This document shows positions 1 to 37,670 of a stretch of 64,000 nucleotides of DNA, piece after piece. Numbering within the stretch: position 1 is the first letter of the stretch; every line of letters begins with the position of its first letter. Location of the stretch: assembly GCA_965637545.1 (NCBI GenBank), contig OZ281495.1, forward strand, positions 4,278,001-4,342,000, given 5' to 3'. The notes below the pieces were generated by a model, which was not told the origin of the DNA, did not search any database, and was given only the letters and a program-made list of their open reading frames with translations. This DNA comes from Phallusia mammillata. Its lineage: Eukaryota. A program made the translations under genes and the position numbers.

Positions 1-31
1 AAATTATATTTCCGAATATGGTATTTTGTAG

Positions 32-888
32 TTACAGAAGAAAAAACAAATCCACTTTACACATCCCATGATTTTTCACCACAGGAAGAATCCTATGCCC
101 AAGTCGACATGACAAAGAAAAATAAAAGTAATTACTTGCCTTGTGTAGTAGTAAATTGAAATACCAAAAACTATGCATATTCGATATATAATTCCTTTTT
201 ACAGTCAAAGAAGAAAAAGCCAATCCACTCTATCAAGCTTACCAAAAACCTCTTGTGGATTTGCATGGAGAGCATCAGGCTCATTGTTCGAAAACGGGTG
301 AGGGTGTATTGTAAAATATATACAGTCAATTTTGTCACATTGTCATACGATTTGTTTCTGCCTAAGAACCAGATAAGAAAGAAAAAATAAATCCCCTGTA
401 TGCAGCATCGAACCCAATGAAAGGAAGTATTGAAGAAGCATATGCAATGGTTGTTAAAAAGAAACAATCTGTTATTGGTGAGATTGTTAGGTTTATATTG
501 GGTTAGATTAAAAACTAAGTGCAAACAGATAGTTTTAACTAAAAAAATTTACTGATAATTTGATTCAATTGATGGATTTGTACTAATTTACATTTTTCCA
601 ATGACAACTTAATTTTTTGGAACAGAAAGCATTGACGAAAAGGAAGAAAAGAAAAATCCCTTGTATTCCGTCTCACAACAATCTTCGTCGTTAACAGGAG
701 AAACCTATGCAACAGTGGAAAAAACAAAATCCGGTATTGTATTTACAATAGTCGAAAGTCTTTGAAATGTTTAACTTTACCATTTTGGGATAGGAGCCAA
801 TGCATCCCCGAAAAAGCCACCAAGACCCCCAATAAAAAAGAAACCAATTATTCCACCAAAAAGTACATACAATTTTTATACCAATTAA
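32..888 (+). CDS. 3' end (cytoplasmic tail) of a probable transmembrane receptor; exons 32-127, 205-297, 373-477, 626-733, 794-888
   Basis: Four AG/GT-bounded phase-1 exons of 96, 93, 105 and 108 nt splice in frame: TEEKTNPLYTSHDFSPQEESYAQVDMTKKNK / KEEKANPLYQAYQKP... / DKKEKINPLYAASNPMKGSIEEAYAMVVKKK / ESIDEKEEKKNPLYSVSQQSSSLTGETYATVEKTKS, then a Pro-rich exon KKPPRPPIKKKPIIPPK to TAA 886-888. An alternative donor at 863 to acceptor 1021 is possible. The upstream part lies outside the window. Confidence 0.8.
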
Positions 889-1685
889 GCATTCATGAAC
901 ATGTTTTAAACTTTACTTGATATAAAACAGCTTTTTCCACCATCATATCCACATTTGACGAATGTAAGTACAAGTTCCAACCCAAAAACGTTTAGAATTT
1001 AAATTTGTACTTCTTTTGTAGAACACACGCGATGTGTAGGATAATATATGTGATGAAAAACATAGAATGATGTGATTTCAACTTAGAAACGCAATTTTAT
1101 GTTTGATTTTATTTGATCACTTTTAAATATCTTTGAATCGCCGGTAATTTAAGCAAGCAGCAATTTAACTTGTCGTCTGTAATTCTTTGTATATTGTCAA
1201 AAAAGCCTGTTTCAAACGCAATGTTGGAAATACATTGTAACTCTATTCTAGTGCCTGTACTGAAATGAGGGTCAATGAGGTTTAACCTTGTCGCACGAAA
1301 TGTACTTGACCGCCAATCCATAAAAGAGAATGCTAACAGAAAAGCGAAACAAGTGTAATTTTATTAAGTCACAAACACACAGTTCTTGCGCCATGATCGT
1401 ATTGCAGTCGATTAGCCCAATAAAGTGACATTTATAGCTGATTTAACTTCTGTTGTTGGGTTGTAAACTTTGCATTTGCATTGATTTGATTACAGGAATA
1501 AAAATAATCAACGTGTTTCCAACAATTTGTTCTTTGCTTATAAAATATTTTTTGAGTATTTTAAAGATTCCCCATGTATAATGTTGTGATGAAGATATTC
1601 TTCTCAATACAATTTCCCCGTTTTCAAAGAAATTATTTTTTAGTTGAAATATTCGCCATGCAGTTTAATTATTTTTCACTGTCAC

Positions 1686-2037
1686 CAGTGATGCACCGAA
1701 GTTTTGGTTGGCCGTAAAAGCCATTCTGATGATGTTTTGGATTCGGCCTTAATCTTTTAATTGTGTCAAATTATTGCCCTTTTTTGCATCGCCGTTTTGA
1801 AATATCACAAACTAACTTTCTGTTGTATCTCAAAAATAAAATATTTGGCAAAATATTAGATGTTTTGTTAAACTTACGTATTTTAAACGTTGTTTTTAAG
1901 TGTACTTGAGTGTTTTGGATGAATGAAGTTCTGTTGAAAACATCCATTACACAGAGGATTTAAGGTTAAGTCTAATTCGGCCAACATTTTTTTCGGCTTC
2001 GGGCTAAACCTTTAGGAGCGGGTTCGGTGCATCACTG
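1686..2037. mobile_element. hAT-like MITE remnant
   Basis: 15-bp terminal inverted repeats CAGTGATGCACCGAA / TTCGGTGCATCACTG, no coding capacity; no recognisable TSD. Confidence 0.6.
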
Positions 2038-2263
2038 ATTTATTCTGTTGTTTGATGATATCACGGTACTTTTTTCAGCTTCTTTTCATTGAATTAGTTT
2101 TCGTTTTGTGTACAAGTATGTAGCATTTTTTGTCTATCATACATGTTGTAACTAATCTTTGTACAAAACAATTCTATCGACCTTATTCTATCTATGAGTT
2201 GTAATTGTGTCAATGTTTGGGGAATTGTTGCCGAATTTGACCTTCACCTAGTCCTACACACAA

Positions 2264-2760
2264 TATATTAGACCAGTGTAGGTTACCTCATGTGAACGTG
2301 CTGTCATGTCCCAATGTCAATTTTATTGAGTCAATGCTATTTAGTGGTTATCTTTGTTCCGAAATAGATTTTACTAGCTATAAAAGGTCATAAAACCCTT
2401 TTCTGTTCGGTACCTCATCCAGCGTAAGTGTGGTTGGTATATGATCAAGGAGCAAGAACCAAATGTTTTCACTGCAAACTTCCTATTCGTTTCGTTTGTT
2501 CGTTTGTCTTGCGGTTTCAAACGAACAAACGAAACGAATAGGAAGTTTGCAGTGAAAACATTTGGTTCTTGCTCCTTGATCATATACCAACCACACTTAC
2601 GCTGGATGAGGTACCGAACAGAAAAGGGTTTTATGACCTTTTATAGCTAGTAAAATCTATTTCGGAACAAAGATAACCACTAAATAGCATTGACTCAATA
2701 AAATTGACATTGGGACATGACAGCACGTTCACATGAGGTAACCTACACTGGTCTAATATA
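2264..2760. repeat. Long apparently perfect inverted repeat (243-bp arms, 11-nt spacer); foldback/MITE-like
   Basis: Arm 2264-2506 is the reverse complement of 2518-2760, spacer TCTTGCGGTTT; both ends read TA. The mirror-image ORFs 2374-2583(-) and 2441-2650(+) are a by-product. Confidence 0.9.
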
Positions 2761-3029
2761 CTTGTTCATCTGTTTTGTTTTAGAACAGCTTGTGGAATAA
2801 TATTCAAAATGTAGGCAACAACAAATAATCATTTTGCTTTGAATAAAAAACTATTTTTTAAACCACACAAAACAGAAAAGATGACATCATTTTATTACCA
2901 CGAAAAAAATATTGTAAATTCTTTACCACAGTAATGCGTTGCATCAGGGAAGTACTAAATATCATGTGATCCTTTTACAGCTTCGACATAATTTCTAGCA
3001 AATTAGGGGGCCCTTTTTCTCTTCTGAAT

Positions 3030-5333: not shown

Positions 5334-7411
5334 TCAGAAGTCTGCAAAATCACGAAAGAAAATTTCTGCTTCATTGTGTTTAGTTTAATTACACGACACA
5401 AATAAAAATGCCTTGTTTATTACGTGTTTGTTATTCTGAAACAAGTATTAACTATTGGTGTTCGTAACTGAAAAATAACCTGTCTTATTTTAAATCAATT
5501 TTGAATTTTGTACCCACCTTTCATTATTTTATTCTTTAAAGCATAACCAATTGCAAGTACAAACAAACCTCCAGTTATGAAGGCAGACAACAGGAGAGCA
5601 ATCCACCCACCCTCAGGGATAGCTGCAAAAACATAATTTAGATGTAATGATTTACATACAGTTGGTAGTGTTACATAATCTTACACGTCGCATGTAGACC
5701 TTCTAAATTTCTCTGATTACCTAAAATAAAGCAAAAGTCAAGTCAACTTTTTTCCCAGCCAGAACGGTGCCGGTAAACACTACTTTTACTTCCAATAACG
5801 AAAGAGTTCGCTTAGTTGTCAATAAATGTTACAATGTGTTAATTTCGGTTTTTCGAAACCACCTTGTTGGGCTTATTCCAATTACCTGGGTTGCATATGG
5901 TTTGAAACTTGCCAGTAATGTCACACACAGCTTGGCCTTGGCCTTGTGAACAAGTTAAGTTAACTACCGTACCATAATCAACAGTACTATTGGTATTCGG
6001 CGGGCAATGTGGAATATCCAAATCAGCGGTGTTGCAAGTAACTAAGAAATGTAAACTATGCTTTTTAAATTGTCGATATACTTTTCAAGCGATCTAACAT
6101 AAGCGGTTAGAGTGAAATATCAATATCAATCATAACTCATACCTTTTACACAGTTATTTGTGTAGTTAAATGATCCATCAAACTGACAAATTCCAAAACC
6201 GTTGCCGTCAAAACCTTTTAAACATGAAAATGTAACGTTGTCTCCTAGACTTGACTTAACTGTTGATGAAGTATTTAAGCCGTTCTGAGGTGGCCCAGAG
6301 CAACCTAATTAGAATCAAAATAAACATATTTAACTAGCTGTACATGAACCAACATGATGAATTCGGTTCCTGAATTTCGATTTTAACGTTTAGAACCTTT
6401 TCAAACGTCGCACCTTCAACCACCGAGAAAGAAGTTTGTCCAAAGTACGGATGACCAAGAAGATCGGGAATAATCACAACATCACTGTCGTTTTGATGCA
6501 CTGGGCCGATTTCCAGAAAAACCATTACCGGGTTTGTGTATGTTATTCTTAGAGCACAAAATAGATTTACAAAGCAAATACCATAAAAAAAATGCAATTG
6601 TATGTGTAAAAAAAAAACTACTTAAAAAATCCCTTTTTTGATGCAAACGGTAATTTTTTTTAAACATGAAACATGATTTCGCATGAAATGCCAAATTGGA
6701 AACAAGTTTTTTTTACCACTTATAATTGCTAATGACATACCAAAAAAGGAGAATAGTCTTTGATTTGCTTTGTTTCATTACCATGCCAAGACTTTCTGTG
6801 GCCTGTAATTACTAAAATGCAGAGACAAATGTTTGAAAACACACACACCTGGTTTTAGAAGGTTCTCAATATATTTGAGTTAAAAGAAACACACTTTAAT
6901 CTTTGATATCGGAAACTTAATGTATTTGCTGACAAAATTATTATTGTTAATTATTAACAAAATTGCACCCTAAAAAAGTATGTAACACCTTGGTGTCATT
7001 CTTGGTTCAACGGACGTACATGATGTTACTGTGTGCATAAATTGACACTGCGCAATTACCTAAAGAATAAGGGAATACAGAATAAACATTTTTGTTAACC
7101 TCAGAAATTGTTACAGATTACGTTTATGTTTTGAAACACCAATACAACATACAAAGCAAACGTTAATCACCCTGCCACCAACCATCCAATTAATCACAAA
7201 GTTTGTTCCAGATAACCCAAAGGAAATTAAAGCGGTCGAATTAACAATTTGTTTTCCGGTGGTAGATCCCAACTCAAGAGGAGGATAAACTAAAACAAAA
7301 CATCAAACAAACAAACTACGTTTTTTTCAGACACAAATCCAGCAGATGTTTTTACCCACCTATTTGTCCATGTGCACAAGCAATGAAAAACAGAAGATAA
7401 AGCAGAAACAT
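5334..7411 (-). CDS. Small type I membrane protein: signal peptide, uncharacterised ectodomain exons, CCP/Sushi-like exon, TM, very short tail
   Basis: Signal exon 7411-7360 (MFLLYLLFFIACAHGQI, phase 1); exon starting at 7289 (VYPPLELGS...INWMVG); Cys exon 6041-5886 (VTCNTADLDIPHCPP...YGTVVNLTCSQG..AVCDITGKFQTICNP); TM exon 5622-5518 (GGWIALLLSAFITGGLFVLAIGYALKNK); tail D-F-stop at 5341-5334. Exons between 7170 and 6300 are unresolved. Confidence 0.6.
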
Positions 7412-11400: not shown

Positions 11401-12007
11401 ATAAAACCTGATTTGATTAGCCACAAACACCGCATTCTGTGCATGTGGTTAGAATGAATTGTTTCGTTTTTATGTTTGTTTTGTGAGTCCATACTTCATG
11501 TTGAAAAATATATCTGGTGAAAGATTTCCTTAAATATTTACTAAAGTAACTGCTAGACGCAACACTATATAACGTTGTGTTATGGGCTACAAAGAATATT
11601 TACAACATACATGATGGACAAAACAATACTACTTAAATACAGAGCAACCAAACACATAAAGTTGCATGAATTAACACATACATGATAACTAAATCATTGA
11701 TTGTCATCCGAGCTCAGTCAGTTTCAAATGAAGTACAGTTTATGAAACATAATAGAAATAATAATCATCCACACAGACAACAACACAAAAAACGTTAAAA
11801 GATTGCCTGTAAACGAAAGGAATTGAAATCTTTTCACGCATCAGCAGAGTTTCCTATTAATTGCTGGATTTCTACAGAAACAACAGGTGATTAGTAGTGG
11901 AAATGTTGGTCAGATATAAATACGACCTACATTCGTCGGATGAAGTTCTGTAGTTCAGTACAGCTGCTCTGCAACAAAAAGAATTTAAACAAAATCTTTT
12001 TGGTGAA

Positions 12008-15000
12008 TTATTCTGGGTTTTTGTGGGTTTTTGTCTTTTCGTTCGAGGAATCGCTGGTTTTTACTAAAAATCGGTTAAATAACGTTTAAAACAATCTTTT
12101 CCTAGTTGTGGCAAACTGCCAAACTTTTTTCTTTGCGAAACATTTTGCTAAAGTGAAATTGTAACGATGCTCTAAACATTGTGGAAAAATGATTCTACAA
12201 CAGGACTGTAGTGTTAGCACATTGGTTGAAATACTTGGTACATATAATTTAGATACATATAACTTTGATTTGTTTTGTCAACTGTATCGTAGGTGTCACT
12301 AGTGAACGATAAAGATTCTTGTGAGTCAGAGTACAAGGGATTTATCCTTTCTTCTTTTTTGCTGTTTTCTGCTTCAAAATGTGTTTTGTCATAAAATCTA
12401 GCAGTTAGAATTCCATCATGATTATTTTGTCTGATTTTACTGCTTCACGAGTAAAGATTTAAGACAAATATGTTCAAATATGGTTGCAACGAAAGAGAAA
12501 TGTGAATTGCCTCAGCTTTACGTTTTCAAATCAACTTTAGCTTAAAGAACAAAAGTTTGGGTATTTTGGTATATGGTGGTCACAGTGTTTGATGCGATAT
12601 CTGTGTGACAGCGAAAATGTTGCAAAATGTACATTTGGATGAAGTATTGCTATATTTGCATGAGGGTTAAAAAATGTGACAAACGAGCCCTTGCAACAAA
12701 AATATTTATCAGTAGTCCCGTAATATACAGACACTAGAGCCATTTTTACCTTGTGTTGTATATCTGTCAGAAGTTGTATCAGTGTTCATGCCACCATAAA
12801 TCGGGTTTATTCGTTCTTCCTTTTCGGATTTCTCCACTTAAAATACATAACGAGTTGACGCTGTATAGTTCGGTGCATTTACAAACGCACAACTTACTTT
12901 TGTTTTTGTCCGACATTTCGACTATTGCATGTTTTTGTTGAGACACTTCTTTGATGGTTTCATTTGTGCCAAAATAAAAGCGAAAAAGAAATGGCTAACT
13001 GTTAGTTAACCTTTTTGTCTTTTGTTTCACGATGTAACAAGTTATCAGACTCTGTTTCAACTAACATTCAGCAAAACCATTATTATTATAATCAGTGAAA
13101 TATTTGTCAAAGAGTAAAAGTGGGTTTTGCCGAAAGTTCAAATTATATGATTACTTTATACCATCTTATATTGCTATTTTCCCTGGTTGAGCTACTTTTT
13201 TTGGTAGCAACCTGATTGTTTTGGTGTGGAATTTCGCCGGCAGCAAAAGGGGATTGCTCCAATCACTAAGGAAACGAGTACAATGCATCCAACAACACTT
13301 GCAGCTATAATGACTGTTTGTTCGCCCGTGCCTGGTGGAATTGGATCAGCACCAGTAAGGTACATATGAGCAGTGAGGGACTCGTGAGGAAAGATACTGG
13401 ATTTAAGAGTGAGTTCAAATTTCTGGTCATGTGTAGATATCTGAAATTGTATGGAGTAACCTAACCTAAAGCGTACGAGCATATGGAAAATATTTGAATG
13501 ATAAATCTGAGTATACTTACCAGGTTTAAGTGAAAGGTCTGTAAAGTGCTTCCATCGTGAAACGAGATGTTGCAAGATGGACAATCAACTCTTTTGCCTG
13601 CAGATAGAGCAATAAAATGTACATCACAAGTTATTGACTTGTTAATGAACACATTGAATAGTTCCGTTTTTTACCATTAGCTGTCAAGATCCAATTATCC
13701 ACTGAAGGATTGGATAAAAAGTGAAATACACATTGTCCGAGTTGAACATCGTTGTGACTGCAATTAACAATGTTGCTAAACTCCGTAACTGCGGCAACTA
13801 ATTAAAGCAAAACAATTGATAAGCGCCCCATCGACTAAAAAGAAAGTAATTTTATCCACACTTACATAAAACATTCACAAGCACAATGCTATATGCGGTT
13901 CCAAAATTGTTGTTAATTAAACAAGTGTAATTTCCCCAGTCGAATCTTGTCCAATTCTTTAATTCCAGAATAGAAGTGTTTCTGTGAGTTTCCCGATCGT
14001 TGAGGGAAGTTATCCATTTAAATGACGTGTTCAGCTCATTTTGATACAAAACACTGCAGTTTAAATTTAAATCATCGCCAACCATGATTTGTTCTGAGTC
14101 GTGTAAGCCATGTCTTATTTCAGGAATTTCTACAAACAATAGCACTTAGATAATAGGTAATTTTGCTTTAGTTGCCATTAAAGAGACTTACTTTCGTTTT
14201 GTTGTACAACAATCAATTCCAGTGATTTGGAATTATCAACTCCATGAGCGTTTGCAGAAAAACAATAAACTGATTGATATTGGTTAATATGCTCGGTTAT
14301 GTTGCATAACCCAAAAGTTTTGTTTGCAAATTGAATTGAGCAGTTAGCTTGTGGATTAGCATCGCTCTCACAATACAACGTCACATCTTGATTTCCATTA
14401 AGTAGTAGGCGTGAACCGGTGTGAATGATGTCGGCGGACTCTTGTGGTGTTACAAGTGCATCATACGGTTTGTCTGAAAAGTGTAAAACAGAAAACAAAT
14501 AAGACAATCTGAGCTTTCGTGCAATCACAGACATAAAACAATTTCAATTCTTCTTACACAGAACAACAATGTCAACATATGCTGCTGTGTTTTGAAACAA
14601 ATCAGTCGTGTTGCAAAAATATCTTCCTGTTTCAAGTCGTGTAATATTCCGCACCAATAATAATGAATTTTCAGATGCGCTTAAGTTTAAAGGCGTAATC
14701 CATTGAAAGGTTGTTTTAAGTTCATTTTGGTAATCAACCTTACAACTCAACTTTAACGTTTGTCCTTCAATTGCAGAGGAAAGTTGTTGAATTTTTGCTA
14801 CTCCTGCCATGATAATTTAATATCAATGGGTAAACCTGATCAAATACATGACAAACTTACTTGATTCTACCACAATTATTTGCTTTCTTTTACTTTCCTG
14901 CGATCCAGCACAAGTTGAAACTTGACACGTGACATATCCTGATTGGTTGAAATAATGATTTGTGTCACATGACTTGGAAAGTATGATTTTATTGAATTCC

Positions 15001-15978
15001 CAAAGGCAAGTAGCGAAATCCACATCGCTTTTGCAGTGAAGCGAAACGTTTTGAAACGAATTGAGAAATATTGTTGATTCCGAAATAATTACGTCATTGA
15101 AAGGATCAACTGTTGTTCTAACTTTACCAGGTTTCGCTAAAAAGTATTTAGTGTTTGTAGATAAAAAATATCAAGATAGTTAGAAAATTTTGAAATATGT
15201 ACATACAAAATACATTGATAGTGATGGTATCAGATCTTCCAGTTCTCTTATATATTTGTGTAAACGGTGTTTGTGCTTGACAGTATATTTTTGTCCCATT
15301 GTGTTGTTGTTGAAGATAGAGTAAGTAGGGTTTGCCCTAACAAACACTACGGTAATATTTTTCAAACATTTAATTTTAGTAAAATGCGTGACAACCTTAA
15401 AAGCAAAAACGTTTTTAAAACAAACCAAATACTTTTTTAATGAATGTCCTTTTTCCACCAATAACAAACTTGGTCATAGTTCCTTGTGGTATTGTATCCT
15501 CGTACAAACATGTTAAGGGAAGAATGTTTCCGATTGCGTTGCATGATGATGAGTTGACTTGTAATGTAACAGATGGTGCTGAAAAAAAAATGGCATACGT
15601 GAATATAGATTTAGGGAAAATGCCCAACCGCTTTTCAGGGCCCAAAATAAAACGCTTTCAGCTTTGTATGTACTTGACTGCTGAGATTTTTCTTGCGCAA
15701 CCACTTGTGTCAGGTTAAGTAAATATTTCCACAAGATTTTTATCTTATGACAGAGTGCAAACATGAAACATATTTCCACTAACCGTTCCAGCATTGTAAT
15801 CGATTCTGACCCGACCATTGAGCTGATTGTAAACAAACTGTTTGAGTGTTTTTTAATCCTGTGCCGTTTGAATGGAAAAGCTTTCCGTCATCCTGACAAC
15901 TAAAATTTCCCGGTGAATTAAAGTTGAAATCAGATTGTGACGTCAGAATTACACCATCGCCTTACGTTTGTCCACAAC
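12008..15978 (-). CDS. CCP/Sushi + multi-Ig type I receptor with NPxY tail modules; several exons carry lesions (partial gene or pseudogene)
   Basis: Sushi exon 15978-15784 (C...FSC...C..W...C, TAA at 15964-15962). Intact Ig exons 15578-15433 + 15336-15207, 15136-14861, 14803-14558, 14473-14192, 14129-13866 (e.g. LKLSC...FQWI...ETGRYFC; LNLNC...FKWI...DWGNYTC). A disrupted exon lies at ~13770-13519. TM exon 13331-13212 (VIIAASVVGCIVLVSLVIGAIPFCCRR). Tail exons 12836-12750 (KEERINPIY), 12371-12264 (KEERINPLY..DTYDTV), 12063-12008. The 5' end and signal exon were not found. Confidence 0.8.
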
Positions 15979-18105
15979 CTAAAACACAAGGATATTGTAA
16001 TTGAGTGACCAGTAGTTCAAACACTTTAACCAACTAATAACTTACTTCGGATTCTCATGGTAATATCATAAACAGAACAAGGTATTCCATAGCATGACGA
16101 ATTCATCTTCACTTCAGTTGTGTCAAAGGATATGGTTTATTTGTTTGGTAATTTTTATAGACTTTGTGTAGTATATTATACAATCACGAGTCTCCAGAGG
16201 CTCAGTACGAGGGATGGAGACGACACCAGACGAGTATATTAACAGACTGTAAACTTTGATCAGTCTGAAATCATTTACTATTTATTAAAGATTACCTGAC
16301 TATAATCCATCTACCGTATCTCAAAAGTGTTGCATATTTATAAGTGCTACAAATGTTTCTCAGAAAAAAATAATAATAATATTGCATTACATTTATCTTT
16401 GATTGAAGGTAAAACAGCAATTAATTGTTAAATGTGTAGTTAAACATGATTGTAGGCAAAGCAAAATGTGAGACTTTAGACGCAGTGCAGGGAAAATATG
16501 ACTTGCCAAAGTTTCAACGTGACTAATTGGAAATGAAAGTCGATTACAATGTTACAATTTTAAGCATCATAGTTAATAACACTGCATTGAGAGCAGCTGC
16601 ACCTCACTTTCTGACGGGTGTTGTCTTTTTGATGATTTTGCGATGGAAGTTCGGTCACTTTGCAAGGTTATGGAATACTTCAAAGCTTACAGTTTGAATT
16701 CTACGTGTCTGGTTTGCCCGCTTCTGCCAAAAGCAATGTTGTCATTGGGGGTAAGTAGGCCACAGTTTTGTTAGATATGTTTTATGAAATATAAGACCCA
16801 AAACAATTCCCAGATAAACGGTTTAAAAATAAATCCAATATAAAACAAATCACGTCAGCAGGTGCGCGGTTTATAGAAAACATTGTCACGCAGCGTTTTC
16901 ACTCACACAATAGGTCGCCATTCATTACATTGGATAATATCACTTTGCTTCACTACCAATGACAAAGTACTTTGACTCTAAAATAATAACTATTTTTTAA
17001 TTCCGACCATGTTGAAAGAGTTTTGTAGTCTAACTGAAAGATAAATTAAGTAACACGCAAGTGCAAAAAGCATCTGCAAGTCTTGCAGAAACGTAAAAAA
17101 ATACTGAGAGCTATAGACGCCAAGCGCAATATACCAAGCTTAGTACTGCACAAAAACGTACGTATAGTTAAACTTCATCAAAGCGCACATGTTCAAACGC
17201 TGTAACATTCAATTTATAAATAAACCTGCTTCCAAGTATAAAGGTACAAAAAGGCCTAGGTACAAATGTCAACCCGAAGTTCATTGTTCGTCATGACGGT
17301 CGTCTTTTGTTTTTCATTGTGCGTGAAAAGTAATTCACGAAGAGGAACTAAACGGAAAACGCTCATCGAAACACAAGCAGTCTTTGGTACCTGAGAGTCG
17401 TCAAACGATTTAATTTAAACTTATATACTTATAAGGTAACTTTGCATCGTTTTCATCTGTTATATTTGTTTGATAATTCAACTTTTATGACAGAATGAAA
17501 GAAATTCTTAAAAAATGATTAAAATGGTGTGAAACATAATTGCTGGAGGAAAAAAACCTGAATCGACAAACAGCGCAATGACGAATGTAAGTACCGCGGT
17601 TGGTATTTTGGTCCTAATTGATGAAACGCAACTACAGAAAGATAAAAAAGTGAATACGACTGAGCTACATTCAACTTGTTACAATTAACCTGGGTCTGCT
17701 GAAAATTTGAACAAAATAATTTCGTCTTTTCTCGCTTTTTCATGGATCAAGTAATTTCGTAGGAATTTATTTGATTTTTCTATTTGCCCTTATCTTTGCT
17801 GACAATTTTGTTTTATGCTACTGGTTGCAACAAATTAATTAGGATTACGCAAATAACTTTATCCAGTTTTTGACCGTCTGATATCCACCCGTGTCGACTC
17901 AGTGGCACAGCCTTGGAGTCGAAAACCTTTCAAACATGGCGTGCCACATTAAATGGGTTTGTATGCCGAAACTGTATTATGTGATAGACTGATAATGGTT
18001 ATAGTCCCTGGTACTTTGAGTAGTAATCATATAGCAAAAAAATTCGTGCGTGTAGGCTGCTTTTTTCACACACTGAAAACTATTAAGCAATGTAATAGTT
18101 TAAAG

Positions 18106-19189
18106 CAGGGGTGCACAACCTGCGGCCGAATAGATAAGTTAGTGCGGCCGTGAATAGCCTATATGTTTGTTAAAATATATGTACTGGCGGTCGTGACGTA
18201 AATAAAACTCTTTTGCTAAATATTTTGATTTTCAAACTGCTCTAAAAAGATTTTGTAAGACTGTAAAGAGTATTACCAGCCTTGTAGCCCCTATACCAGA
18301 CCTGGGCATTGTACGGCCCGCGGGCCACATCTGGCCCGTTGGCTGTCCCTGTACGGCCCGCGTGAGGTCAAGTAAATTGAAACATAAATCAAAAAAGGCC
18401 TATTTATGCTGTGCATAAAATACGACAATTGTTTTTGTAGAAATATATATATAGGTAAATTTATATTTGTATATTACGTATTACCGCGCATGCGTGGGCG
18501 TACAGCTACATGTGATGCTAATCAAAGTCTACATAAAACACAAATTATCCAACCCATTGTTACGCAACAAAGTCATATTGAGCCCTTCTGTGTAACAATG
18601 GATTGGAAAACATGTGTTTTATGTAGAATTGATGCTGGTAAGCTAGCCCTCATCATGTCAGCCTAATGCAAATACAAAAAAGTCGATTCAGAATGACGCA
18701 CTTTCAACAAGTCATGGACTGTTAAATATTTGTTTACAGAAGTCAAAGATAAAGCTGTGTGTTTAGTTTGTTGGACTCTGTTGCCCTAACGCCGGATAAA
18801 TTGATGAGCAGAATTAGGTTTCAACTTTTATTGGTCCGGCCCTACCACACAAGTCAGTTTTCTTGTGTGGCCCTTTTCAAAAATTAATTGCCCACCCCTG
18901 CCCTATACATTAGACTTTTTATACCCTTATTGTGTGTAAACAATGTTAAAAACAGGCACCACTTGCGTCATAATATACATTGTGACGTCATAAATAGCTA
19001 AGAGTGGTCGTCAGACTGTTTAGCTCAATCTGTGCATCAAGTTAGAAATTAATCTGGACTTTTTGGTCGCCATTAGGTGGTTTATATACGTGAGAAAAAA
19101 CTATCTTTCACATCAGCAATTTTAGGCGGCCGCTTGTGAAATAAAGTCCTGCGATGCGGCCGTCGTAGCAAAAAGGTTGTGCACCCCTG
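18106..19189. mobile_element. hAT-family MITE (outer element)
   Basis: TIRs CAGGGGTGCACAACC / GGTTGTGCACCCCTG; 8-bp TSD GTTTAAAG / GGTTAAAG (7/8). Same family as 54696-55017. Confidence 0.85.
18297..18900. mobile_element. hAT-family MITE nested inside 18106-19189
   Basis: Imperfect TIRs CAGACCTGGGCA / TGCCCACCCCTG; perfect 8-bp TSD CCCTATAC at 18289-18296 and 18901-18908; GGCCCG-rich subterminal repeats. Confidence 0.85.
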
Positions 19190-19769
19190 GGTTAAAGGAT
19201 ATCAAAGATGAGTATATGAAATCGTAAATTGTTTGGCGTAGCAGAAAAAAATCTATTGGACTGCTTGCCAAAAGTTGCCGACCCTTTCTATAATGTCACT
19301 CAACGTTTCAACTCTTTAAGGTCATTTTCTCCTCACAAGAACCTGTGTGGCACTTGTATTTAACTTCCCATTACTCTCGTTCAGCGCAATTACAACCGTT
19401 AGGTTTTCGCATCTGTGTTCGTGTTTTATCATCAAAATAATTCATCGTGCGTATCATGTTGATGTACACGTTAACGAAACATATTGTACTGCACAAACGG
19501 AACGATCTGAGCCAAACTTTAGAATAGTGGTTCTTGCCAGGGGCGTTATCCCGAAATGAGTAATCTGACATTTTACTAGGGCATAATTACATCACGAATT
19601 TTTTCATAGAAAAGCGGGGAATTTAAAAACCGCCTGACTGTTTCTGTAATGAAAACTAAAAAAGGTTAAGAGCTACTGCTCAGACGGTAAGGCATTAAAA
19701 ATTCCAAGCTATAACTCATTCGACTGCTGTTGTTAAGGCAAACAAAAATTTATTAAATCTTGTATTTAG

Positions 19770-22754
19770 GAGTTTGGTACATGTCGGGCGGATCTGATAA
19801 AATGTTATGATGACAATCGAGGCTTTTTGGGCCGGGGAACGTTTTCCTGTGTCCGACTCGGACGAATGGACGACAAGGATGTTGCTTTGAAAATTTTCGA
19901 TCTAAAGCCACAAGAAGGGATATTTGTTAACTCAGGATACAGGTAACGTAATCACTTTTACCTTACAATGACGGTAAATTTTCACTCATAGAATATAGTT
20001 CCAATACATAGTCACTCATAGAATATAGTTCCAATAAATATCACGCAGCAGCGAGTGCAGGCCGACCGGGCAAATATGTCACTATTCCGTCACTATTTAT
20101 TTTTAGAGTAAAGGAGGAATTCAAATTGCTCGACAAGATCCATCACGACAACATAATAACAACTTTCGGCTTTACACGATGGGATCAATTCCGGATGGCG
20201 ATTGTCACCGAATATTTGCCCTGCGGTGACCTTGAAGGGTTATTGTTTCACCCCAGCAACGAAAATAGTGACGTCAGCTTTCCTTTGCGTCTGCGATTGA
20301 TTTATGACGTCGCAAAAGGTGTAGAGCACTTGCACAATCTTCCTGGAGGAGGTTACGTGGTTCATGGCGACCTTAAGTGTGGCAACATTTTGTTGACAGA
20401 AAATCTTGGTTGCAAAATTCCTGATTTCGGCAGCGCGTTTCTGGTGCAACGTGACGATGAAACAGAAGGTAATGATGGCCTTGTTCCCTTTACGATTCTA
20501 TACGCAGCACCTGAGCTTCTATGTGATGCAGACCTGCCCAGTAAGAAAACCGATGTTTACAGCGTTGGGATAATCATCCAGGCCGTAATTTTTCGCTTTT
20601 CGCCGTATACGCATGTTCTTGATTATGTATCCAGCGATGAGAGGAACGTTAAGATAAAAGATGCGATTTTGCGCGGAAAAGCACCAATTCCTGATGAACA
20701 TCAAACGTTTGTTCAAACAGAAGCTAATCGAAAGGGGTACAAACAATTGGTTACTAATATTGTAGCAGAGGCAAACAACTGTTGCAATTACTCGCCGGAG
20801 CACCGCCCACAGATCCCTGGTGTCCGTAAAAAAATCGAACCTCTAGTGGAGAAATATTCTCCAAAAAGAAAGGAGATCCAAACCATCGTCGGGTTGCTGA
20901 AAGCCGGCCATCACTTCGCTCAAGATAAAACCAAACTCGTTGCGCTTCCTAGATTTTCTTTCGAAAAAGAAGACTTAGACGGTAAACTATTTACTAAATT
21001 TACATAAGTTATTTGCCACTTTCGGAAAATTACAGCGTTCTAATGATTTTCTACGATTTTTTTCTACAGGAATAAGCATACAATCTTCTTGACAGTTTTC
21101 CTTTTATTGAAGGTGCAACGGATATTTTTATTTCTACATTTAGTGTTTTTTTCTGATTTCCTGGCGTTTAAAGGCATAAATGTTTTTCTTCAAGCCAGTT
21201 TTAGTTTTCTGGCAGCCGATATTTTGATCTGTGATGGAACTTTATTTAATATAGATTCGTGGAAATTGATTCGATGTAAATTAATGAAGTTTTTGTGCAA
21301 ATGTCAATATTTGCTCAAACTGATTTCCATGTGATGTATTCACAAATACAATCAATTTTTATTAAATTGTGTTTTAGATTGAAGTTCTAGCAAACAACAC
21401 AGTGACAACATCGGGAAACAATTTTCCAAACAGACAAAGGAAAACAATAAGAACAAGGGTGATAAAATTAGAACACAAGACAAGCAGGTGAAAGATCAAG
21501 CAAACAAACCATCCAGTTCACAAAGTTTGTCACCAGGTAAAAGTAAAAGAACAAAAGTTTAAAAAATAAATATTAACAAACGATCGCGATGGATTTTAAT
21601 TAAAATTGCAGTTTGTGAGTTTTCCAAACACAATTTTACGATGTTAATATATACGTAATACACAAGTTGCGATCGGTCTGGAGTTGACACACGTGTTTAA
21701 ATTTGAACTTGGTTACACATTTAGATAAGATTCCTGGCAAGGAACGAAAACGAAGTATGGATGGAAAATTGGTAACACAAGCAGCGGGGAACGCCATACG
21801 CAGAAAAAATGCAAAACAAAGCGAAACAGATAAAGCATACAAAGTTTTTCCTTCACAAAGCATTTTATCAGGTCGGTGATAAAAAAATAAACACCAACTG
21901 AGCCCTGAAACATAGGTAACTCTGACATGTTTTGGGGTTGAAATAATAGTAGGCAAAAACTTGAACGTTATGCGAAATTAAAGATCGCACTTCGCAAGTA
22001 GTTTACTATTTACATGATGACATGATTAATTCGTGTAATAAATACAATTCTGAAAATTCAGACAAAAAAGTGCATTCAGTAGCAGACAACCTGGAGGGAC
22101 AGAAACCAAATACAACATATAGCCAACAGATGAAAAGGCACGAAAAGGATTCTTCTTTCCAAACACGGCAATCAGCAGGCATGTAAAAACAAGCGTACAT
22201 AAAGTTGCAAAAAATATCGTATCGGGTTTTAATAAGTATTCCACTTCATCACATTTTTTATTTTTTACGTTTTTGTTGCTTTGAAATCTAATTATGAGTA
22301 TGTTTTAAATCAACCGTTTCTAAGTTACATTTAATTTAATCTTTTACATACTTAATTTTTAATTTTTTGTAATTTTAGAAGTTAAATTCATTTTATTAAG
22401 CAACGGAAAACAAAACAACTTGCACTTTGGCTGCAAGAAACTACAAAAACATGTTAAATACAGTGTGTTAAGCGTACACACTAGTTATTGCTATAAAGTT
22501 GGTTAATAATCGCCATTGTTTTTGTGATCCTTTTTGGTGTTGTTCTGGAGAGGGTGTCTAACTATACTTTGCAACCACAGGGCGAAGAAATGATCGCTGT
22601 CCTGAGGTTTGGTTGTTCGTGGTATGTAAACACATTCTTTACTTTAAACTGATTTAATATTAAACATTTATGTCTTCGTAAACAGTTTGCACTTGTACTA
22701 ATTCTATTGTGGATACCCAATCAGCAATTTTTCTACCAGAACCGTCGCCACTAG
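19770..22754 (+). CDS. K1: RIPK-like non-RD TKL kinase with predicted C-terminal TM anchor
   Basis: Exon 19770-19942 (LGRGTFSCV, VALK); exon 20107-20981 (HGDLKCGN, IPDFG, APE, KTDVYSVG). Phase-1 linker exons 21378-21536 (in-frame TGA at 21380), 21725-21871, 22062-22178 (GC donor). TM exons 22581-22621 + 22686-22754: CPEVWLFV|FALVLILLWIPNQQFFYQNRRH*. The start exon is not resolved. Confidence 0.85.
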
Positions 22755-26609: not shown

Positions 26610-27445
26610 GAGATTGTAGCTTGCGACCCAAGTAAGATCCGTTGTTATACGGGGAAAAGGTGGTTTAATTGGCCGTGGTAGATTTTCTTGTGTGCGACTC
26701 AGATGAACGGAAAGAATGTTGCACTCAAGTATTTTACTCTTACATATCAAAAACATGTGACGGGTAAGTTTTACATTTTAACCAATCAATGACAGGTTAA
26801 GTAAGAAGACATAAGTAGTTGCTGTTAAAAAATGACTCTTGTCTTCGATTCAATAAACCGAAAATATGTTTGTTTTCGGAATTCGAAAGCAGTTTGAGCT
26901 GCTTAAGCTGGTACACCATGAGAACGTACTGAGGACACCCGAGCTTACTGAATGGCGTGACAACATGACTATTGTGACGGAATGCTTGCTTTACGGTGAC
27001 CTAGCGACGTTATGGTTTAGAGAACGTGAAAGCGATCGACTATGCCACGTCACTCTTTCATGGCGACTGCAGTCGATTTATGACGTAACAAAAGGGGTTC
27101 CGCACTAGCACAACACTTTTGAAGGTGGTCACGTGGTTCATGGCGACCGCGACAACGTTTTGCTGACCTTCAATCTTAGGTGTAAAATCGCAGATTTCGG
27201 GTGTTCGTTTTTGATGAAGAGTGACGAGGACGTACAGGGAGCAACCAAAATGGCCCTTATCACCGCCTATACCGCCCCAGAGCTTTTTGAAAGATAAAGT
27301 GTGCCCAGCCATGAAAATTGCCGACGTCTATAGCGTTGGAATGATCAATCCCTTATTTGTTTGCTCTCGACCATTTGCACTTGATGACATTAATGAAACC
27401 AGTCATCAAGATGATGAAACTGAAAAGAAAGCGGTATTAAGGTAG
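26610..27445 (+). pseudogene. K2: kinase pseudogene of the same family
   Basis: Exon-1 remnant 26610-26763 (IGRGRFSCVRL, NVALK) with frameshifts. Kinase exon has a stop at 27106-27108, a damaged catalytic loop (HGDR-DNV), retained KIADFG and TAPE, and further stops/frameshifts. Confidence 0.9.
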
Positions 27446-28539
27446 GTGTCCAGAGCTGTAAGTCTTGGAATAAAACTGGCTTGATTTTGGCCCAACGTAA
27501 TGTTTGGCCGCAATGTGTCGTAAATTTTCTTAGTTAATCTAACTTTCGGGTTTAATTGGGGATTTATCATGCACTCTTTTTTGGAGAACTTGCTAAATCG
27601 CTACTTTGTGGAAACATTCAGTTACAAATTTAAGCTATACATTTCAATACGCATTAGTACAAAGTCATTTTAATTTTTTTTGACAGAAATAATCTTAGGC
27701 ATTCTGAACGTTTGACCAAAAGCAAGTGTTATCTTCGTACATAAATTGTTCCAGCCTCTTCCTAAAACACTCAAGTGAACAAAAATAAGTGTAACGTCAA
27801 GTAAATGAAAATGAAACACAACTACAAATGGAAATGCCCACGCAAAGTTGTCCATTGTTAGCACGTACGGTGGTTGGTTTCCATTGTGTGTCGGTTTTAT
27901 TCCACAAAACAGGTAGCAGATAAAATAACAACCATCGAAACAGGAACCAGAAGTCCCATACACCAAAGCATATACTGGACATAAATTAGTATGCAAGTTT
28001 TCGGATGTCGAAATAGTCGTGTTTAAGTTAGGATGTGTTTATTGTTGCTTGGCACCGTTAACCTAGGGAAAATATGCCAATGAAAGGGATATGTTTGGCG
28101 TTGTGGGTCAACGATTTTGAAAATATTGGAATATTATGAGCGTTAATAGTTTGTAATCGTCTGCCATTTCAATGGATCTCACAGGCAAAACAATATTTTG
28201 AATGACTGTTACATTCTTAAACATTTTCCCTGCAGAAAAAGCTACAATCAGCCCACGGGGCAGTCTGTAACGCAGAAAAATGTTCCGTTGTGTTTAGTAA
28301 AATTTGTTGAACTGGCATAAAAGCAAGTACTATCACTGGAACGACTTAACGATCTCAGTAAATAACCTGCTATCAAAAGTGTTAAAATTCTAAGCAAGAA
28401 CTATAAACCTTATTAACTATACAGGTCTCGCTTATGTAACTTACTGAAAAGGATAATAAAAAGTGGAAAATCAGAAACAGCTGTTAAACACCAAATCTCG
28501 ATGGTTTGTTTGTAGGAGTTTGTAATCTAGGGACCAAAT

Positions 28540-30500
28540 ATGATTAGTTGTTATGCTGGTAAACGAGGTTTATTAGGCAAAGGAGCGTTTGGTGCTGTTC
28601 GACTCGGACGGAGGAACAACCAAGACGTTGCACTGAAATGTTATCACACGAAAACACGAAAACAAGGAGTATTGATGACACCAGATAAGTACGTGGGCGG
28701 GTGCCTATAAGTTTAAGTAGTTAAACATGGACTGGTTGCTAAAAAAGTCACTTTTTACGTTAACTTAGAGGATTCTTTTTTCTTTTTTGTGTTGTGTACA
28801 AACACCAATTTAATTTTCAGAATTTCAAATGAGTATGAGTTGCTTTCCATGGCAAATCACGAAAATGTTGTAAAAACATTTGGGTTAACGCAATGGAATA
28901 ACGACAACTGGATGGCCATTGTGACGGAATACTTGCCCAACGGTGACCTTGGAAAGTTATTGTACAAGACAAGTGATGGCAAAAGCAACCAAAAATGCGA
29001 CATCAGCTTTCCATTGAGTCTGCGTTTGATTTATGACGTCACAAAGGGGGTAGAGTACTTACACAATCATCTTGAAGGAGGTCACGTGGTTCACGGCGAC
29101 CTAAAGTGCGATAACATTTTGCTGACAAAAAATCTTTTTTGTAAAATTGCTGACTTTGGACTCGCGTTTTTTGTAAAAAATGGCGATGAAGAAAAACAAG
29201 GTAAGCAAGCGATATTTGAAATGACCTTTGCTGCGCCAGAAATTCTTAAGAATATGGCGCTTCCAAGCAAAAAAACTGATGTCTACAGTGTAGGAACAAT
29301 TATGCAGACCGTACTCTTTCGTTCTCCTCCATTTTCATTTGTTTTGCATCGAGTTAACCCCGTCCAAAAAAGGGAGGCAGTTTTGAACCATTTTGCACCA
29401 TTTCCTATTGATCTGTGTATGTTTGTACGTGCAGAAGCTGCACAAAAGGGATGTGGAGGCTTAGTTGCAGAGATTGAAAAAGTGGCAAACAAATGCCGGA
29501 ACTACAATCCAGCTGATCGTCCGGAAATTGCTGATGTCCGTAAAATACTTTGCAAATTGTTAGATAAACATTCCCCTACAAGAGAGGAAATCCCCTCAAT
29601 CGAAAAATTGCTAAACACAGCCCCACTTTTCGAACGAGATGAAGCCATCCTCGTTCCGCTCACAAAGTTTTGTCCTGAAACTGGTGGTTTACTTCCAGAT
29701 CAAGACACTGATAAGCAGCAGCCACAAAGTGCAAAGAGTGAGAACAAAACCAATGAGGCGGGTGAAACGCAAGGGAAAAGTCAACCTCATCAGGCTAGAA
29801 CTTTCCAAACATCGTCAAAAGGTACGTGGCAAATATTTAGCAACAATTACATCTATAGGCTATACCGCATACCTTTACATAGCTAGTCCAAATCGGCTGC
29901 ATATTTTTTACAATTAGATCATAAAGAAACATGTACGAGCAACGTCACAGCTCATGCGATGCCAAACATCACACACAGGAGAATTACAAAGCAACAAATA
30001 AATGTCTTACCAGTCAGGGCTTCTCAGTTACACAGCTCCTCAGCCGGTTGGTATTGTCAAAGATTAAACAATAACAAAGTCACAAAAGGCTTTGGCTTAC
30101 AATTGAGATCAACAGGGAAGTCATTCCGATATTTAGTACATTGACACAATGTAGCAGCTTGATACTTTTAAACCGGTTACGATCCAAACAAATGTAAAAA
30201 TATGCTAAAACAGTGCTTTTTGACTGCATTTTGTTTCTTTAGTCGGTTTGTTTTAAGCAGCCAAACAGATTTTATAAAAAGAATACTTTTTTTCCCTTTT
30301 CCCAAGCAGAATTCATAGAACCAGAAAAGAAATGGACGTTTTGGAACCCGTCAACAGTTGTAGTCATCGGCACCATATTCGTCGTAAGTAACTGCATCAT
30401 TGGTCCAAAAATCAGGTATTTAGTGAATTTGTTCTCACCTATTTGTGTGCAGGTCGCTTATGTATTGACTATGATATGGATCCACAGTCAGTTGCGTTGA
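28540..30500 (+). CDS. K3: RIPK-like non-RD TKL kinase with predicted C-terminal TM anchor
   Basis: Exon 28516-28688 (ATG 28540; LGKGAFGAV, VALK); exon 28821-29821 (HGDLKCDN, IADFG, APE). TM exons 30310-30383 + 30453-30500: WNPSTVVVIGTIFV|VAYVLTMIWIHSQLR*. Confidence 0.9.
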
Positions 30501-35456: not shown

Positions 35457-37670
35457 ATGTGGTTTATATTTCAAAAGCTGTACAACTGGTGGAAATCAAT
35501 AGACACTGGGGTAATTATGAGCTGTAGTTTAATTCGAAGGAAACTAAATCTACTTGAAACTAATCAAAATAATGTAATTTATAAAAGATTGAAATTGGTG
35601 TCGAATTTGCTAAAAACAAACAAAATACTAACCCATAATATGAAAGCTTTCAAGTTTGCTTAGCTGTAGGCTAAACTTGAGAATTCCTTCATCAAGGGCA
35701 AAAAGCTTCAGCTTTCAGCGCAGACAAAACATTTCTTGTGAGCTTATGTGAGGTAAATTTAATTCACAAACTTTTCTACTTAGAAGTGTGGCACATGTGG
35801 ACCGGATAAGATCAGTTGTTATCTGGGTGAAAAAGGTTCCCTTGGCAAAGGCGCATTTGCCTGCGTTCGACTTGGACTGATGAACAACAATGATGTTGCG
35901 TTGAAGTGTTTCAACGTGAAATCAAAGCCACAAGGAATCCCACAGTCATCAGAAACGTAATGACTTACCTAAACCGAAGCGTATATGTAAATAAGTTACC
36001 ATAAAATTGCAAATGTAGAAGCCAGCCACTGAAGTTAAACACTGACTGACGCTTATATTGCTCTTTAAACTGATTTTATTTTTAGAATTTGGGAAGAGTT
36101 CGAATTACTTCGAACGGCAGATCACCAAAATGTCGTAAAAACATTCGAGTTGACGCAATGGGATCGAACGAACTGGATGGCCATTGTGACTGAATACTTG
36201 CCTTGTGGTGACCTTGCAACGTTATTGTACAACACAAGCGATGGCAAAAGCAATCAAAAATGTGACATCAGCTTTCCTTTGCGCCTGCAATTGATTTATG
36301 ACGTCACAAAGGGGGTGGAGTACTTGCACCGTTTTTCTGGTGGAAAGTACATCGCCCATGGTGACCTAAAATGTGACAACGTGTTGCTTACCGTCGATCT
36401 TAGATGTAAAATTGCTGATTTTGGTTCCACGTTTTTAGTGAACAGTAATGAGGGTCCGAAGTTAACTGGTGAACATCCAATGCAATTTGCCATCACGCCC
36501 CACTATGCGGCACCAGAGCTTCTCTCTGGCCAGTCTCTTTCGTGTAAGGCGACCGACGTTTACAGCGTGGGAATGATTATCCAGACGGTTCTATTTCGTT
36601 TTCCACCATTTTTACACATCATTGAAGGCGTATCCCAGAGCCAGGATTGTGAAAAGATTAAATCCGCGGTTTTAAGTAAAACAGCACCGGTCCCATTCGA
36701 TCTACGCTTATGCGTAGCTATGGGAGCCGAACAGAGCGGATGTATGAACTTATTTCTTGAAATTGAAAATGTTGCAAACAAATGTCGAAGTTACTCGCCA
36801 ATAATCCGACCCCACATTACTGAAATCTGCGAACGGTTTAGGGTTCTACTGGAACAGCATTCCCCTGCAATAGAGGAGATCGAATCCATAGCGGAATTGC
36901 TAAAAGGGGGCCACCACTTTTCTCGCAATAAAACCGAACTCGTTCCACTTACAAGGTTTTGTCCCGAAAATGGAGGATTGCTTTCAGGTCAAAGAAGTAA
37001 AGCTCCATATTCCCCGTTAAAAGGTTAGTGACAAAAATATTATTACAAACCGCTGTACAAATACATCGCCGGATTTTAGTGAAAACGCTTAAGCAATGGT
37101 TCTTGTTATTTGAGTGAGTTACGTCAACCGTGTTGCTATTGACGTAACTGGAAAAGTACGCAAAATATTTATTCTTTAGTTAAACATATAGTTGGCTACT
37201 CCGTTACTTTTTACGCATGCTTTATAAGTATTAGACTTTTCCGCTCACTATAGGCCGTACACTTCATTTCGTTTTTCGGCTATAAAATTCGGTTCACTAG
37301 AGTGGGTTTTAACAACAAAACTGTGAAAACGTATGTTTAAAAAGGGCCGTAAGCTCACTTCGGTAAACATTTGAACTACATTTTACTGTTTGGTGCTTTA
37401 TATGACAGTGGGCTACAATGGTTTGACTTGATTGCATCATAATCAGACACTTTTAGTTACATACATTTAGGCTAGGATTGTATAATAATAACAAACAACT
37501 TTGCAATTACAGCACCAGAAGAACGGCCGATCGGGGTTTGGTTAATCATTGTAAGTTAACATGATATGCATGTTAAACTGATTTATTATTATTACTAAAA
37601 TAACCGTATCAAATATTTACAGTTTGCCCTCATATTGATTGCAATATGGATCCCAAGCCAGCAGCTGTAA
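35457..37670 (+). CDS. K4: RIPK-like non-RD TKL kinase with predicted C-terminal TM anchor
   Basis: Probable first exon 35457-35510 (MWFIFQKLYNWWKSIDTG, phase 0); exon 35784-35956 (LGKGAFACV, VALK); exon 36086-37023 (HGDLKCDN, IADFG, APE). TM exons 37513-37550 + 37623-37670: APEERPIGVWLII|FALILIAIWIPSQQL*. Confidence 0.9.

Follow-up and report, generated by a model that had tools for sequence, protein, structure and literature searches.

A probable immunoglobulin-superfamily receptor gene of Phallusia mammillata with a tail built from NPLY module exons that are shared among ascidians

We analysed a stretch of 64,000 nucleotides (nt) from the ascidian Phallusia mammillata (contig OZ281495.1, positions 4,278,001 to 4,342,000 of the forward strand), which is called here the window at its full length. 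The gene whose 3' end opens this window on the plus strand was named gene A. It was probable that the region from position 32 to ~1023 represented the 3' end of a gene for a type I receptor of the immunoglobulin (Ig) superfamily, and that the tail of this receptor was a docking platform with one exon per module. The exon anatomy of the tail was clear, the gene belonged to a conserved family, and the rule of one module per exon held in other species as well.

The tail of gene A, read at positions 32-888 of the plus strand, comprised four module exons followed by a basic, proline-rich exon. Module exon 1 (32..127, 96 nt) encoded TEEKT-NPLY and ESYAQV and had a lysine-rich end, while module exon 2 (205..297, 93 nt) encoded KEEKA-NPLY and was without a YAxV motif. 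Module exon 3 (373..477, 105 nt) read KKEKI-NPLY, EAYAMV and then KKK, and module exon 4 (626..733, 108 nt) read EKEEKK-NPLY, ETYATV and then EKTK. Exon 5 (794..888) encoded PKKPPRPP..KKKPIIPPK and ended either at the TAA at 886-888 or at position 862. All four module exons were of phase 1-1, and each was bounded by an AG acceptor and a GT donor. Across the five exons, the frame was open in a single phase and 10 of the 10 splice dinucleotides were intact; the window contained no N. The splice junctions 127>205, 297>373, 477>626 and 733>794 rested on the sequence and on comparison. A preliminary description of this DNA had proposed four consecutive phase-1/phase-1 exons, each with an E/K-rich start and NPLY, and the translation together with the AG/GT bounds bore it out. 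Likewise, the ESYAQV, EAYAMV and ETYATV motifs that it had placed in three of these exons were found in exons 1, 3 and 4. Thus, gene A had four NPLY and three YAxV motifs in total. In module exon 2, HQAHC stood at the aligned positions where the other modules read YAxV, and the second tyrosine motif was lost there by substitution.

The pattern of the module exons exceeded chance. NPLY occurred six times in the six frames of the 64 kb, and four of these occurrences fell within the first 900 nt; second-order Markov simulations gave an expectation of 0.9 per 64 kb. Moreover, a repeat search identified a 36-nt direct repeat in four copies (24-59, 197-232, 365-400 and 630-665) with 64-81% identity, which spanned the acceptor, the K/E run and NPLY. 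At the protein level, the modules were 41-50% identical among themselves. The introns of gene A (60-148 nt) had no likeness among them. Since the repeat was limited to exons and the introns were dissimilar, the module duplications had to be old. Tandem Repeats Finder reported no array in 1-3000 because the repeat was limited to exons and too diverged. The lengths of the module exons (96, 93, 105 and 108 nt) were all divisible by 3 and their phases were all 1-1, and therefore each of them could be omitted without a frameshift, as had been claimed previously.

A profile made from the four modules of gene A and two modules of a neighbouring gene (paralog B, described below) was searched in 1.84 billion representative proteins; other searches used single exons, or family proteins, one by one. 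The profile matched Ciona intestinalis XP_078490936 (LOC104265904, 1011 residues, expectation value (E) 6e-39) and two proteins of Clavelina lepadiformis, namely LOC143446606 (1001 residues, E 1e-36) and CAK8677370 (674 residues, E 3e-32). Further matches were Phallusia mammillata CAB3262620, C. savignyi H2Y3Z3 and Styela clava LOC120326230, and more Ciona and Clavelina paralogs came from the further searches; Clavelina LOC143446604 also belonged to this family. Single exons led to the same family: in tblastn, exon 1 matched residues 794-823 of the Ciona protein P0001 (61% identity, E 7e-8) and exon 3 matched the Styela protein P0010 (50% identity, E 6e-5). The full-length matches had a signal peptide, one membrane segment and 5-7 tail modules. 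Ig domains were recognised by Pfam in the Ciona and Clavelina proteins, and the Phallusia protein CAB3262620 had the same build with weak Ig-type Pfam matches. The family reached three ascidian orders (Phlebobranchia, Aplousobranchia and Stolidobranchia), its members were found in ascidians only, and their source names were all "uncharacterized". We found no published function for family members, and full-text literature searches returned no description of the tail.

The consensus of the family module was KEEK-(V/I)-NPLY-x(11-13)-(E/D)xAYAEVDKKK, and in most modules the two tyrosines were 12-14 residues apart. The tyrosine of (E/D)xAYAEV-D-KKK, which is the second one, was kept as strictly as NPLY in Ciona, Clavelina, Phallusia and Styela. 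Gene A shared with these uncharacterised ascidian Ig receptors the K/E run, NPLY, the (E/D)xYAxV motif 12-14 residues on and the K run, as well as a basic, proline-rich exon after the modules. Namely, modules 1, 3 and 4 matched the family module in full and module 2 matched it in the NPLY half only. However, the modules of gene A were more diverged, one of them had no YAxV, and its proline-rich exon was without the (T/V)Y(A/S/T)EV motif present in that of the relatives.

According to the exon maps of Clavelina (loci L001 and L003) and Ciona (locus L002), each module was encoded by its own exon with phase-1 ends. Downstream of the modules, these relatives had KPKKKKKPPPP-type exons (one or two), then an exon of 45-50 nt ("Y..V(D)LHGS") and finally the last exon; exon 5 of gene A corresponded to the KPKKKKKPPPP exons of Clavelina and Ciona, without their tyrosine. 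The one-module-per-exon maps therefore provided independent support for the exon model of gene A, and the earlier claim that tandem symmetric exons build up a receptor tail was strengthened by the same phase-1 layout in the Ciona and Clavelina homologs. The number of modules ranged from 2 to 7 across genes and species, which fitted duplication and loss and agreed with the suggestion that the tail was built up by exon duplication. Some Ciona and Clavelina modules were almost identical to each other, suggesting recent duplication or conversion there.

Some profile matches fell outside this family. Several of them were spurious, being translated FNPLYAGHK-type repeats from metagenomes. The non-ascidian proteins P0008 (Paramuricea clavata, CAB4011871), P0014 and P0017 contained repeated "xYAQVDK" or "xYATVDK" motifs without NPLY. 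The YAxVDK repeats were accompanied by a K run in P0017 and by a proline stretch in P0008 and P0014, and P0017 also had a membrane segment and the C-terminal end AVYSVVNKPSPPQ. It may be that the YAxVDK-basic unit predates the ascidians, or it may be convergent.

Paralog B was located in inverted orientation, on the minus strand, at about 11.9-16.1 kb of the window, and its exons (all on that strand) extended from the ectodomain to the tail. A Cys-rich Sushi-like exon (15782..15961) had 54.5% identity to residues 146-199 of the Clavelina protein P0002 (E 2e-12) and no Pfam match. About four Ig-type exons followed (13855..15170; tblastn to P0002, E 1e-22), and two segments (13855-14145 and 14547-14816) gave Pfam matches to Ig_3, I-set and ig. 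The stalk and transmembrane exon (13216..13440) encoded the hydrophobic VIIAASVVGCIVLVSLVIGAI and then a CCRR stop-transfer signal, and it matched residues 549-616 of P0001 in tblastn (E 1e-5). In the tail, there was an NPIY module exon without YAxV (12750..12836) and a last module (12264..12371) that read KKEERI-NPLY and then DTYDTV. By analogy with the Sushi-like, Ig and membrane exons of paralog B, the ectodomain and the membrane segment of gene A should be located just upstream of the window.

Between module 4 of gene A and the final module of paralog B, the amino acid identity was 63%, which was above that between module 4 and its own sister modules. Therefore, at least module 4 predated the split between gene A and paralog B. 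At the DNA level, exon 4 and its paralog B counterpart were ~78% identical and the flanking introns ~45%. The tail of paralog B (11875-13060, minus strand) looked partly decayed. Namely, one unit read QKHAIVEMSDKNK, with H where gene A has Y; the proline-rich exon had lost 1 nt in comparison with gene A and contained a stop in phase, and a 35-nt stretch after it was missing. When the five exon peptides and five family proteins were used as tblastn queries, the segment 23.5-34.5 kb yielded sub-threshold matches only (E above 1). Family genes were clustered in other ascidians too: LOC143446606 and LOC143446604 were tandem neighbours in Clavelina (OX392440.1, 25.20-25.27 Mb), and in Ciona (AP043576.1) LOC100184005 (1205 residues) was located tail-to-tail ~9 kb from LOC104265904.

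The 3' end of gene A was uncertain between two routes. A final PPRPP/PPK exon had been described, and the proline-rich exon from 794 stood, but its end may be spliced to a 33-nt mini-exon. As a terminal exon, exon 5 would end the protein with ...IIPPKSTYNFYTN and the TAA at 886-888. Alternatively, the GT at 863-864 would end it at 862 as a 69-nt exon of phase 1-1. The candidate mini-exon (931..963, plus strand, 33 nt, phase 1-1) had a cag acceptor and a perfect donor, GTAAGT, at 964-969, and a tag acceptor at 1019-1021 would give a split stop from T963 and AA1022-1023. This route would read ...PPK-TFSTIISTFDE before the stop split into T and AA. The blocks GACGAATGTA.GT and TGTAGAA around the candidate sites were common to gene A and paralog B, which was weak evidence, since an alignment of this kind can by chance contain identical blocks of ~10 bases. 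In the Ciona and Clavelina relatives, the proline-rich exons were followed by exons of 45-50 nt, and it was exactly there that the Clavelina isoforms varied; the 3' end of gene A was not alignable to the "Y..V(D)LHG" mini-exon of these relatives. We put the likelihood that the mini-exon at 931-963 is used as a coding exon at roughly one in three. A "VDLHG" string in exon 2 was compared with the C-terminal "VDLHG" of the relatives and rejected as a coincidence; codon by codon, it aligned with "LTGETYATV" of module 4.

Some relatives in the family have annotated isoforms that lose a tail unit in frame, which is not evidence for skipping in gene A itself. In the RefSeq annotation of Clavelina LOC143446604, isoform X4 joined 27231-27344 to 28379-28480 and omitted the 120-nt module exon L003:28128-28247. 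Isoform X3 of Ciona LOC113475625 had one 27-residue tail unit fewer, and the isoforms X1-X3 of LOC143446606 differed in their terminal mini-exons.

PTB and FERM-F3 domains bind NPxY motifs, and SH2 domains bind pYxxV-type sites. In the mechanism that we propose, the unit of the tail would be a segment of ~31-36 residues composed of a K/E-rich lead-in, NPLY, an acid-preceded YAxV motif 12-14 residues later and a lysine run. The tail was of low complexity and repeated, so it would probably act as a flexible multivalent docking platform. Upon clustering of the receptor, a Src- or Syk-type kinase would phosphorylate the tyrosines of the acid-preceded YAxV motifs and SH2 proteins would bind to them, whereas NPLY would bind PTB or FERM-type (FERM-F3) adaptors. 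The lysine runs could keep the tail on the acidic inner leaflet of the membrane until activation. In this mechanism, valency would be set by the number of modules, through exon duplication and loss over evolution and possibly through in-frame skipping in individual transcripts.

A number of observations weighed against this reading. The ectodomain and the membrane segment of gene A lie before position 1 of the window, so an orphan tail is possible. No RNA-labelled sequencing run of Phallusia mammillata was found to contain the exon stretch; 90% of its words were contained in two runs of one study, the type of which was not stated and was probably DNA. Contig sets presumed to be RNA (four sets from four studies) gave nothing on 1-1600 at 88% likeness, although such small sets cannot show absence; the only matches were two stray 31-nt pieces at 1683-1714. 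The divergence of the gene A modules, the loss of YAxV in one of them and the absence of the relatives' tyrosine from exon 5 pointed in the same direction. So did the motifs themselves. Classical PTB ligands have a hydrophobic residue five positions before the tyrosine, and in the NPLY motifs found here it was located four positions before, not five. In ESYAQV, EAYAMV and ETYATV, the V three residues after the tyrosine fitted, but the residue two before it was E. Therefore, the YAxV sites failed the consensus of both the immunoreceptor tyrosine-based inhibition motif (ITIM, (I/V/L/S)xYxx(I/V/L)) and the switch motif (ITSM, TxYxx(V/I)), and the previously claimed likeness to ITIM/ITSM was not supported. 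Similarly, the first tyrosine was followed by x-x-S, and thus the NPLY/YAxV pair was not an immunoreceptor tyrosine-based activation motif (ITAM). With regard to skipping, the RefSeq isoforms were computed models, and isoforms X2 and X3 of LOC143446604, each with one repeat unit fewer, had non-canonical junctions inside near-identical repeats, which may be artefacts or haplotype differences. Finally, binding and phosphorylation were read from motifs in every species.

These observations raised the question of whether gene A, or at least its tail, was a silent or decaying relic of a real family within a birth-and-death cluster. Such an origin would account for the blank RNA search, for the YAxV lost from module 2 and the tyrosine lost from exon 5, and for modules far more diverged among themselves than those of Ciona or Clavelina; moreover, the neighbouring paralog B showed decay at its tail end. 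On the other hand, five exons open in one phase, ten intact splice dinucleotides and the retention of all four NPLY and three YAxV motifs spoke against a decaying copy, and against paralog B the exons were clearly better conserved than the introns. Additionally, the RNA data consisted of small contig sets of uncertain type. We considered decay or silencing to be unlikely. A more trivial explanation was that the frames were open by chance in AT-rich DNA (32% G+C) that was rich in lysine codons and in which AAA and GAA runs were common. It was refuted by the occurrence of four NPLY motifs within 900 nt when 0.9 were expected in 64 kb, and by the profile matches to annotated ascidian receptors (E 1e-32 to 1e-39), where the exon phases matched as well.

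Another explanation concerned the function rather than the integrity of the tail, which might be mainly a sorting or uptake signal. In this case, unphosphorylated NPLY would recruit clathrin or engulfment adaptors, or talin and kindlin, and the lysine runs would keep the tail on the membrane. FxNPxY works unphosphorylated in receptors of the LDL-receptor type and of the CED-1/Draper type, and integrin beta tails recruit talin and kindlin; in the integrin beta-3 tail, the motif nearest to the membrane is also NPLY. Furthermore, NPLY was the most strictly kept element, present in 4 of the 4 modules of gene A and in nearly all modules of the relatives. However, a pure sorting signal left the strictly kept second tyrosine motif without explanation, and the aromatic residue of classical endocytic signals five positions before the tyrosine was absent (K was found there and V/I four before). 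A mainly sorting role was therefore distinctly unlikely, and in the comparisons below the tail is considered as a docking platform of an Ig-superfamily receptor.

The closest published relatives, by analogy, appeared to be the fester co-receptors (FcoR) of Botryllus schlosseri. FcoR are type I receptors with three Ig-like domains as well as a Sushi domain, and their genes are organised in clusters (PMC12582321). Their tails are encoded by many small exons and contain ITIM, hemITAM, YxxI/L/V (core-1) and, at the C-terminal end, paired [A/D]VYxxV (core-2) motifs; YAxV-type sites such as LAYAIV are present, and alternative splicing switches the tail motifs (PMC12582321). NPxY has 0 occurrences in the FcoR paper, which mentions neither a repeated module nor Ciona (PMC12582321). 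Our comparison was made with this published description and not with FcoR sequences, and Botryllus proteins were absent from the matches of the Phallusia tail-only, Ciona full-length, Styela and profile searches. Both groups consisted of type I receptors of ascidians whose outer part is Ig-like and Sushi-like, and both had many small tail exons and multigene clusters. Splicing altered the motif content of the tail in FcoR and, according to the annotated isoforms, in the family described here. The three YAxV sites of gene A fitted core-1, whereas a core-2 pair, a canonical ITIM and a hemITAM were not present in gene A. In comparison to the three Ig-like domains of FcoR, there were more Ig-type exons in paralog B (~four) and in the Ciona and Clavelina genes.

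Other members of the family offered a lead. The tail end of the Styela protein contained AVYAAV and AVYSEV, and the Clavelina tail ends contained two (T)Y(A/T)EV-NKPKKKKKPPPP exons with tyrosines ~28 residues apart. By analogy, these ends resembled the C-terminal core-2 pair of FcoR. Tentatively, the exon with NPLY and an acid-preceded YAxV might be an undescribed two-tyrosine unit of an ancient ascidian system that includes FcoR, with the strength of the signal set by the number of modules; we regarded this as possible but not likely. The tail was present in solitary species (Ciona, Phallusia and Styela) as well as in colonial ones, so the receptor class would predate colonial allorecognition.

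The preliminary description had compared the tail to Draper, CED-1 and MEGF10. The likeness to these receptors and to PEAR1 was that of a type I tail pairing NPxY with a second tyrosine motif, which is a likeness of motifs without homology. The ectodomains of Draper, CED-1, MEGF10 and PEAR1 are of the EMI and EGF-repeat type, and a YxxL or ITAM site is present in these receptors. In contrast, the ascidian family had YAxV, an x-x-S rather than x-x-L/I after the first tyrosine, and a unit repeated up to seven times. Pfam found no EGF domain in the Ciona and Clavelina relatives or in paralog B, where the matches were to the Ig family only, and no YxxL/I pair or ITAM was seen in gene A and the family modules. 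With Ig/Sushi-like ectodomains and neither EGF nor YxxL/ITAM, the comparison was reduced to the motif level, and the term "ascidian Ig receptor, FcoR-like" should replace the Draper analogy. With respect to design, the family could also be compared to PECAM-1/CD31, where the tail is encoded by short, alternatively spliced exons (exons 9-16) and a 19-residue exon with a functional tyrosine alters the behaviour of the receptor (PMC2132561). Both were Ig-superfamily tails made from short exons, which is an analogy and not homology; the PECAM-1 exons are not mutual repeats, have canonical ITIM/ITSM tyrosines and contain no NPxY.

Several other features were noted in the window. Between gene A and paralog B, at about 5840-6235 on the minus strand, there were Cys-rich, Sushi-like open segments. 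They had no Pfam match and showed weak tblastx similarity (E 0.3-0.4) to a 420-residue Sushi-type gene located head-to-head with the Ciona homolog (L004:4182-9574). Judging from their sequence, these segments could belong to a fester-family-like partner gene; on two of the three chromosomes, the neighbour of FcoR is a partner gene from the fester family (PMC12582321). A perfect inverted repeat was found at 2264-2506 and 2518-2760, with 243-nt arms that were 100% complementary and an 11-nt spacer, and it was either a very young hairpin/foldback element or an artefact of long-read assembly. Upstream of paralog B, a ~1.1-kb element (18099-19196) bounded by 23-nt terminal inverted repeats, TTTAAAGCAGGGGTGCACAACCT and its complement (91% complementary), looked like a non-autonomous DNA transposon. 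In addition, at least six related long open frames were arranged in tandem on the plus strand (20012-21004, 28717-29883, 36069-37025, 41631-42602, 50314-51330 and 62666-63715). Protein-kinase domains (Pkinase and PK_Tyr_Ser-Thr, E 1e-22 to 1e-32) were detected by Pfam in all 4 of the 4 scanned frames. These frames had the common N-terminal stretch "..ELL..ADH.NV.K.F.LTQW..NNWMAIVTEYLPCGDL", and the frame at 50314-51330 was split in two by a stop.

The gene A copy itself was of limited value, as it was one diverged member of the family, cut by the edge of the window and without RNA evidence. The family had a wider meaning. Among living animals, ascidians are the nearest relatives of the vertebrates, and their immune-type receptors have been charted poorly. 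In a 2025 report, Botryllus FcoR were described as bearing the tyrosine signalling motifs that underlie allorecognition. Apart from a possible identity with FcoR, the repeat-tail receptors seemed to be undescribed. If the link to FcoR is true, then the signalling half of an allorecognition system would be open to study in tractable solitary ascidians, for example Ciona. Moreover, the family would provide a testable case of receptor valency tuned by exon number and splicing.

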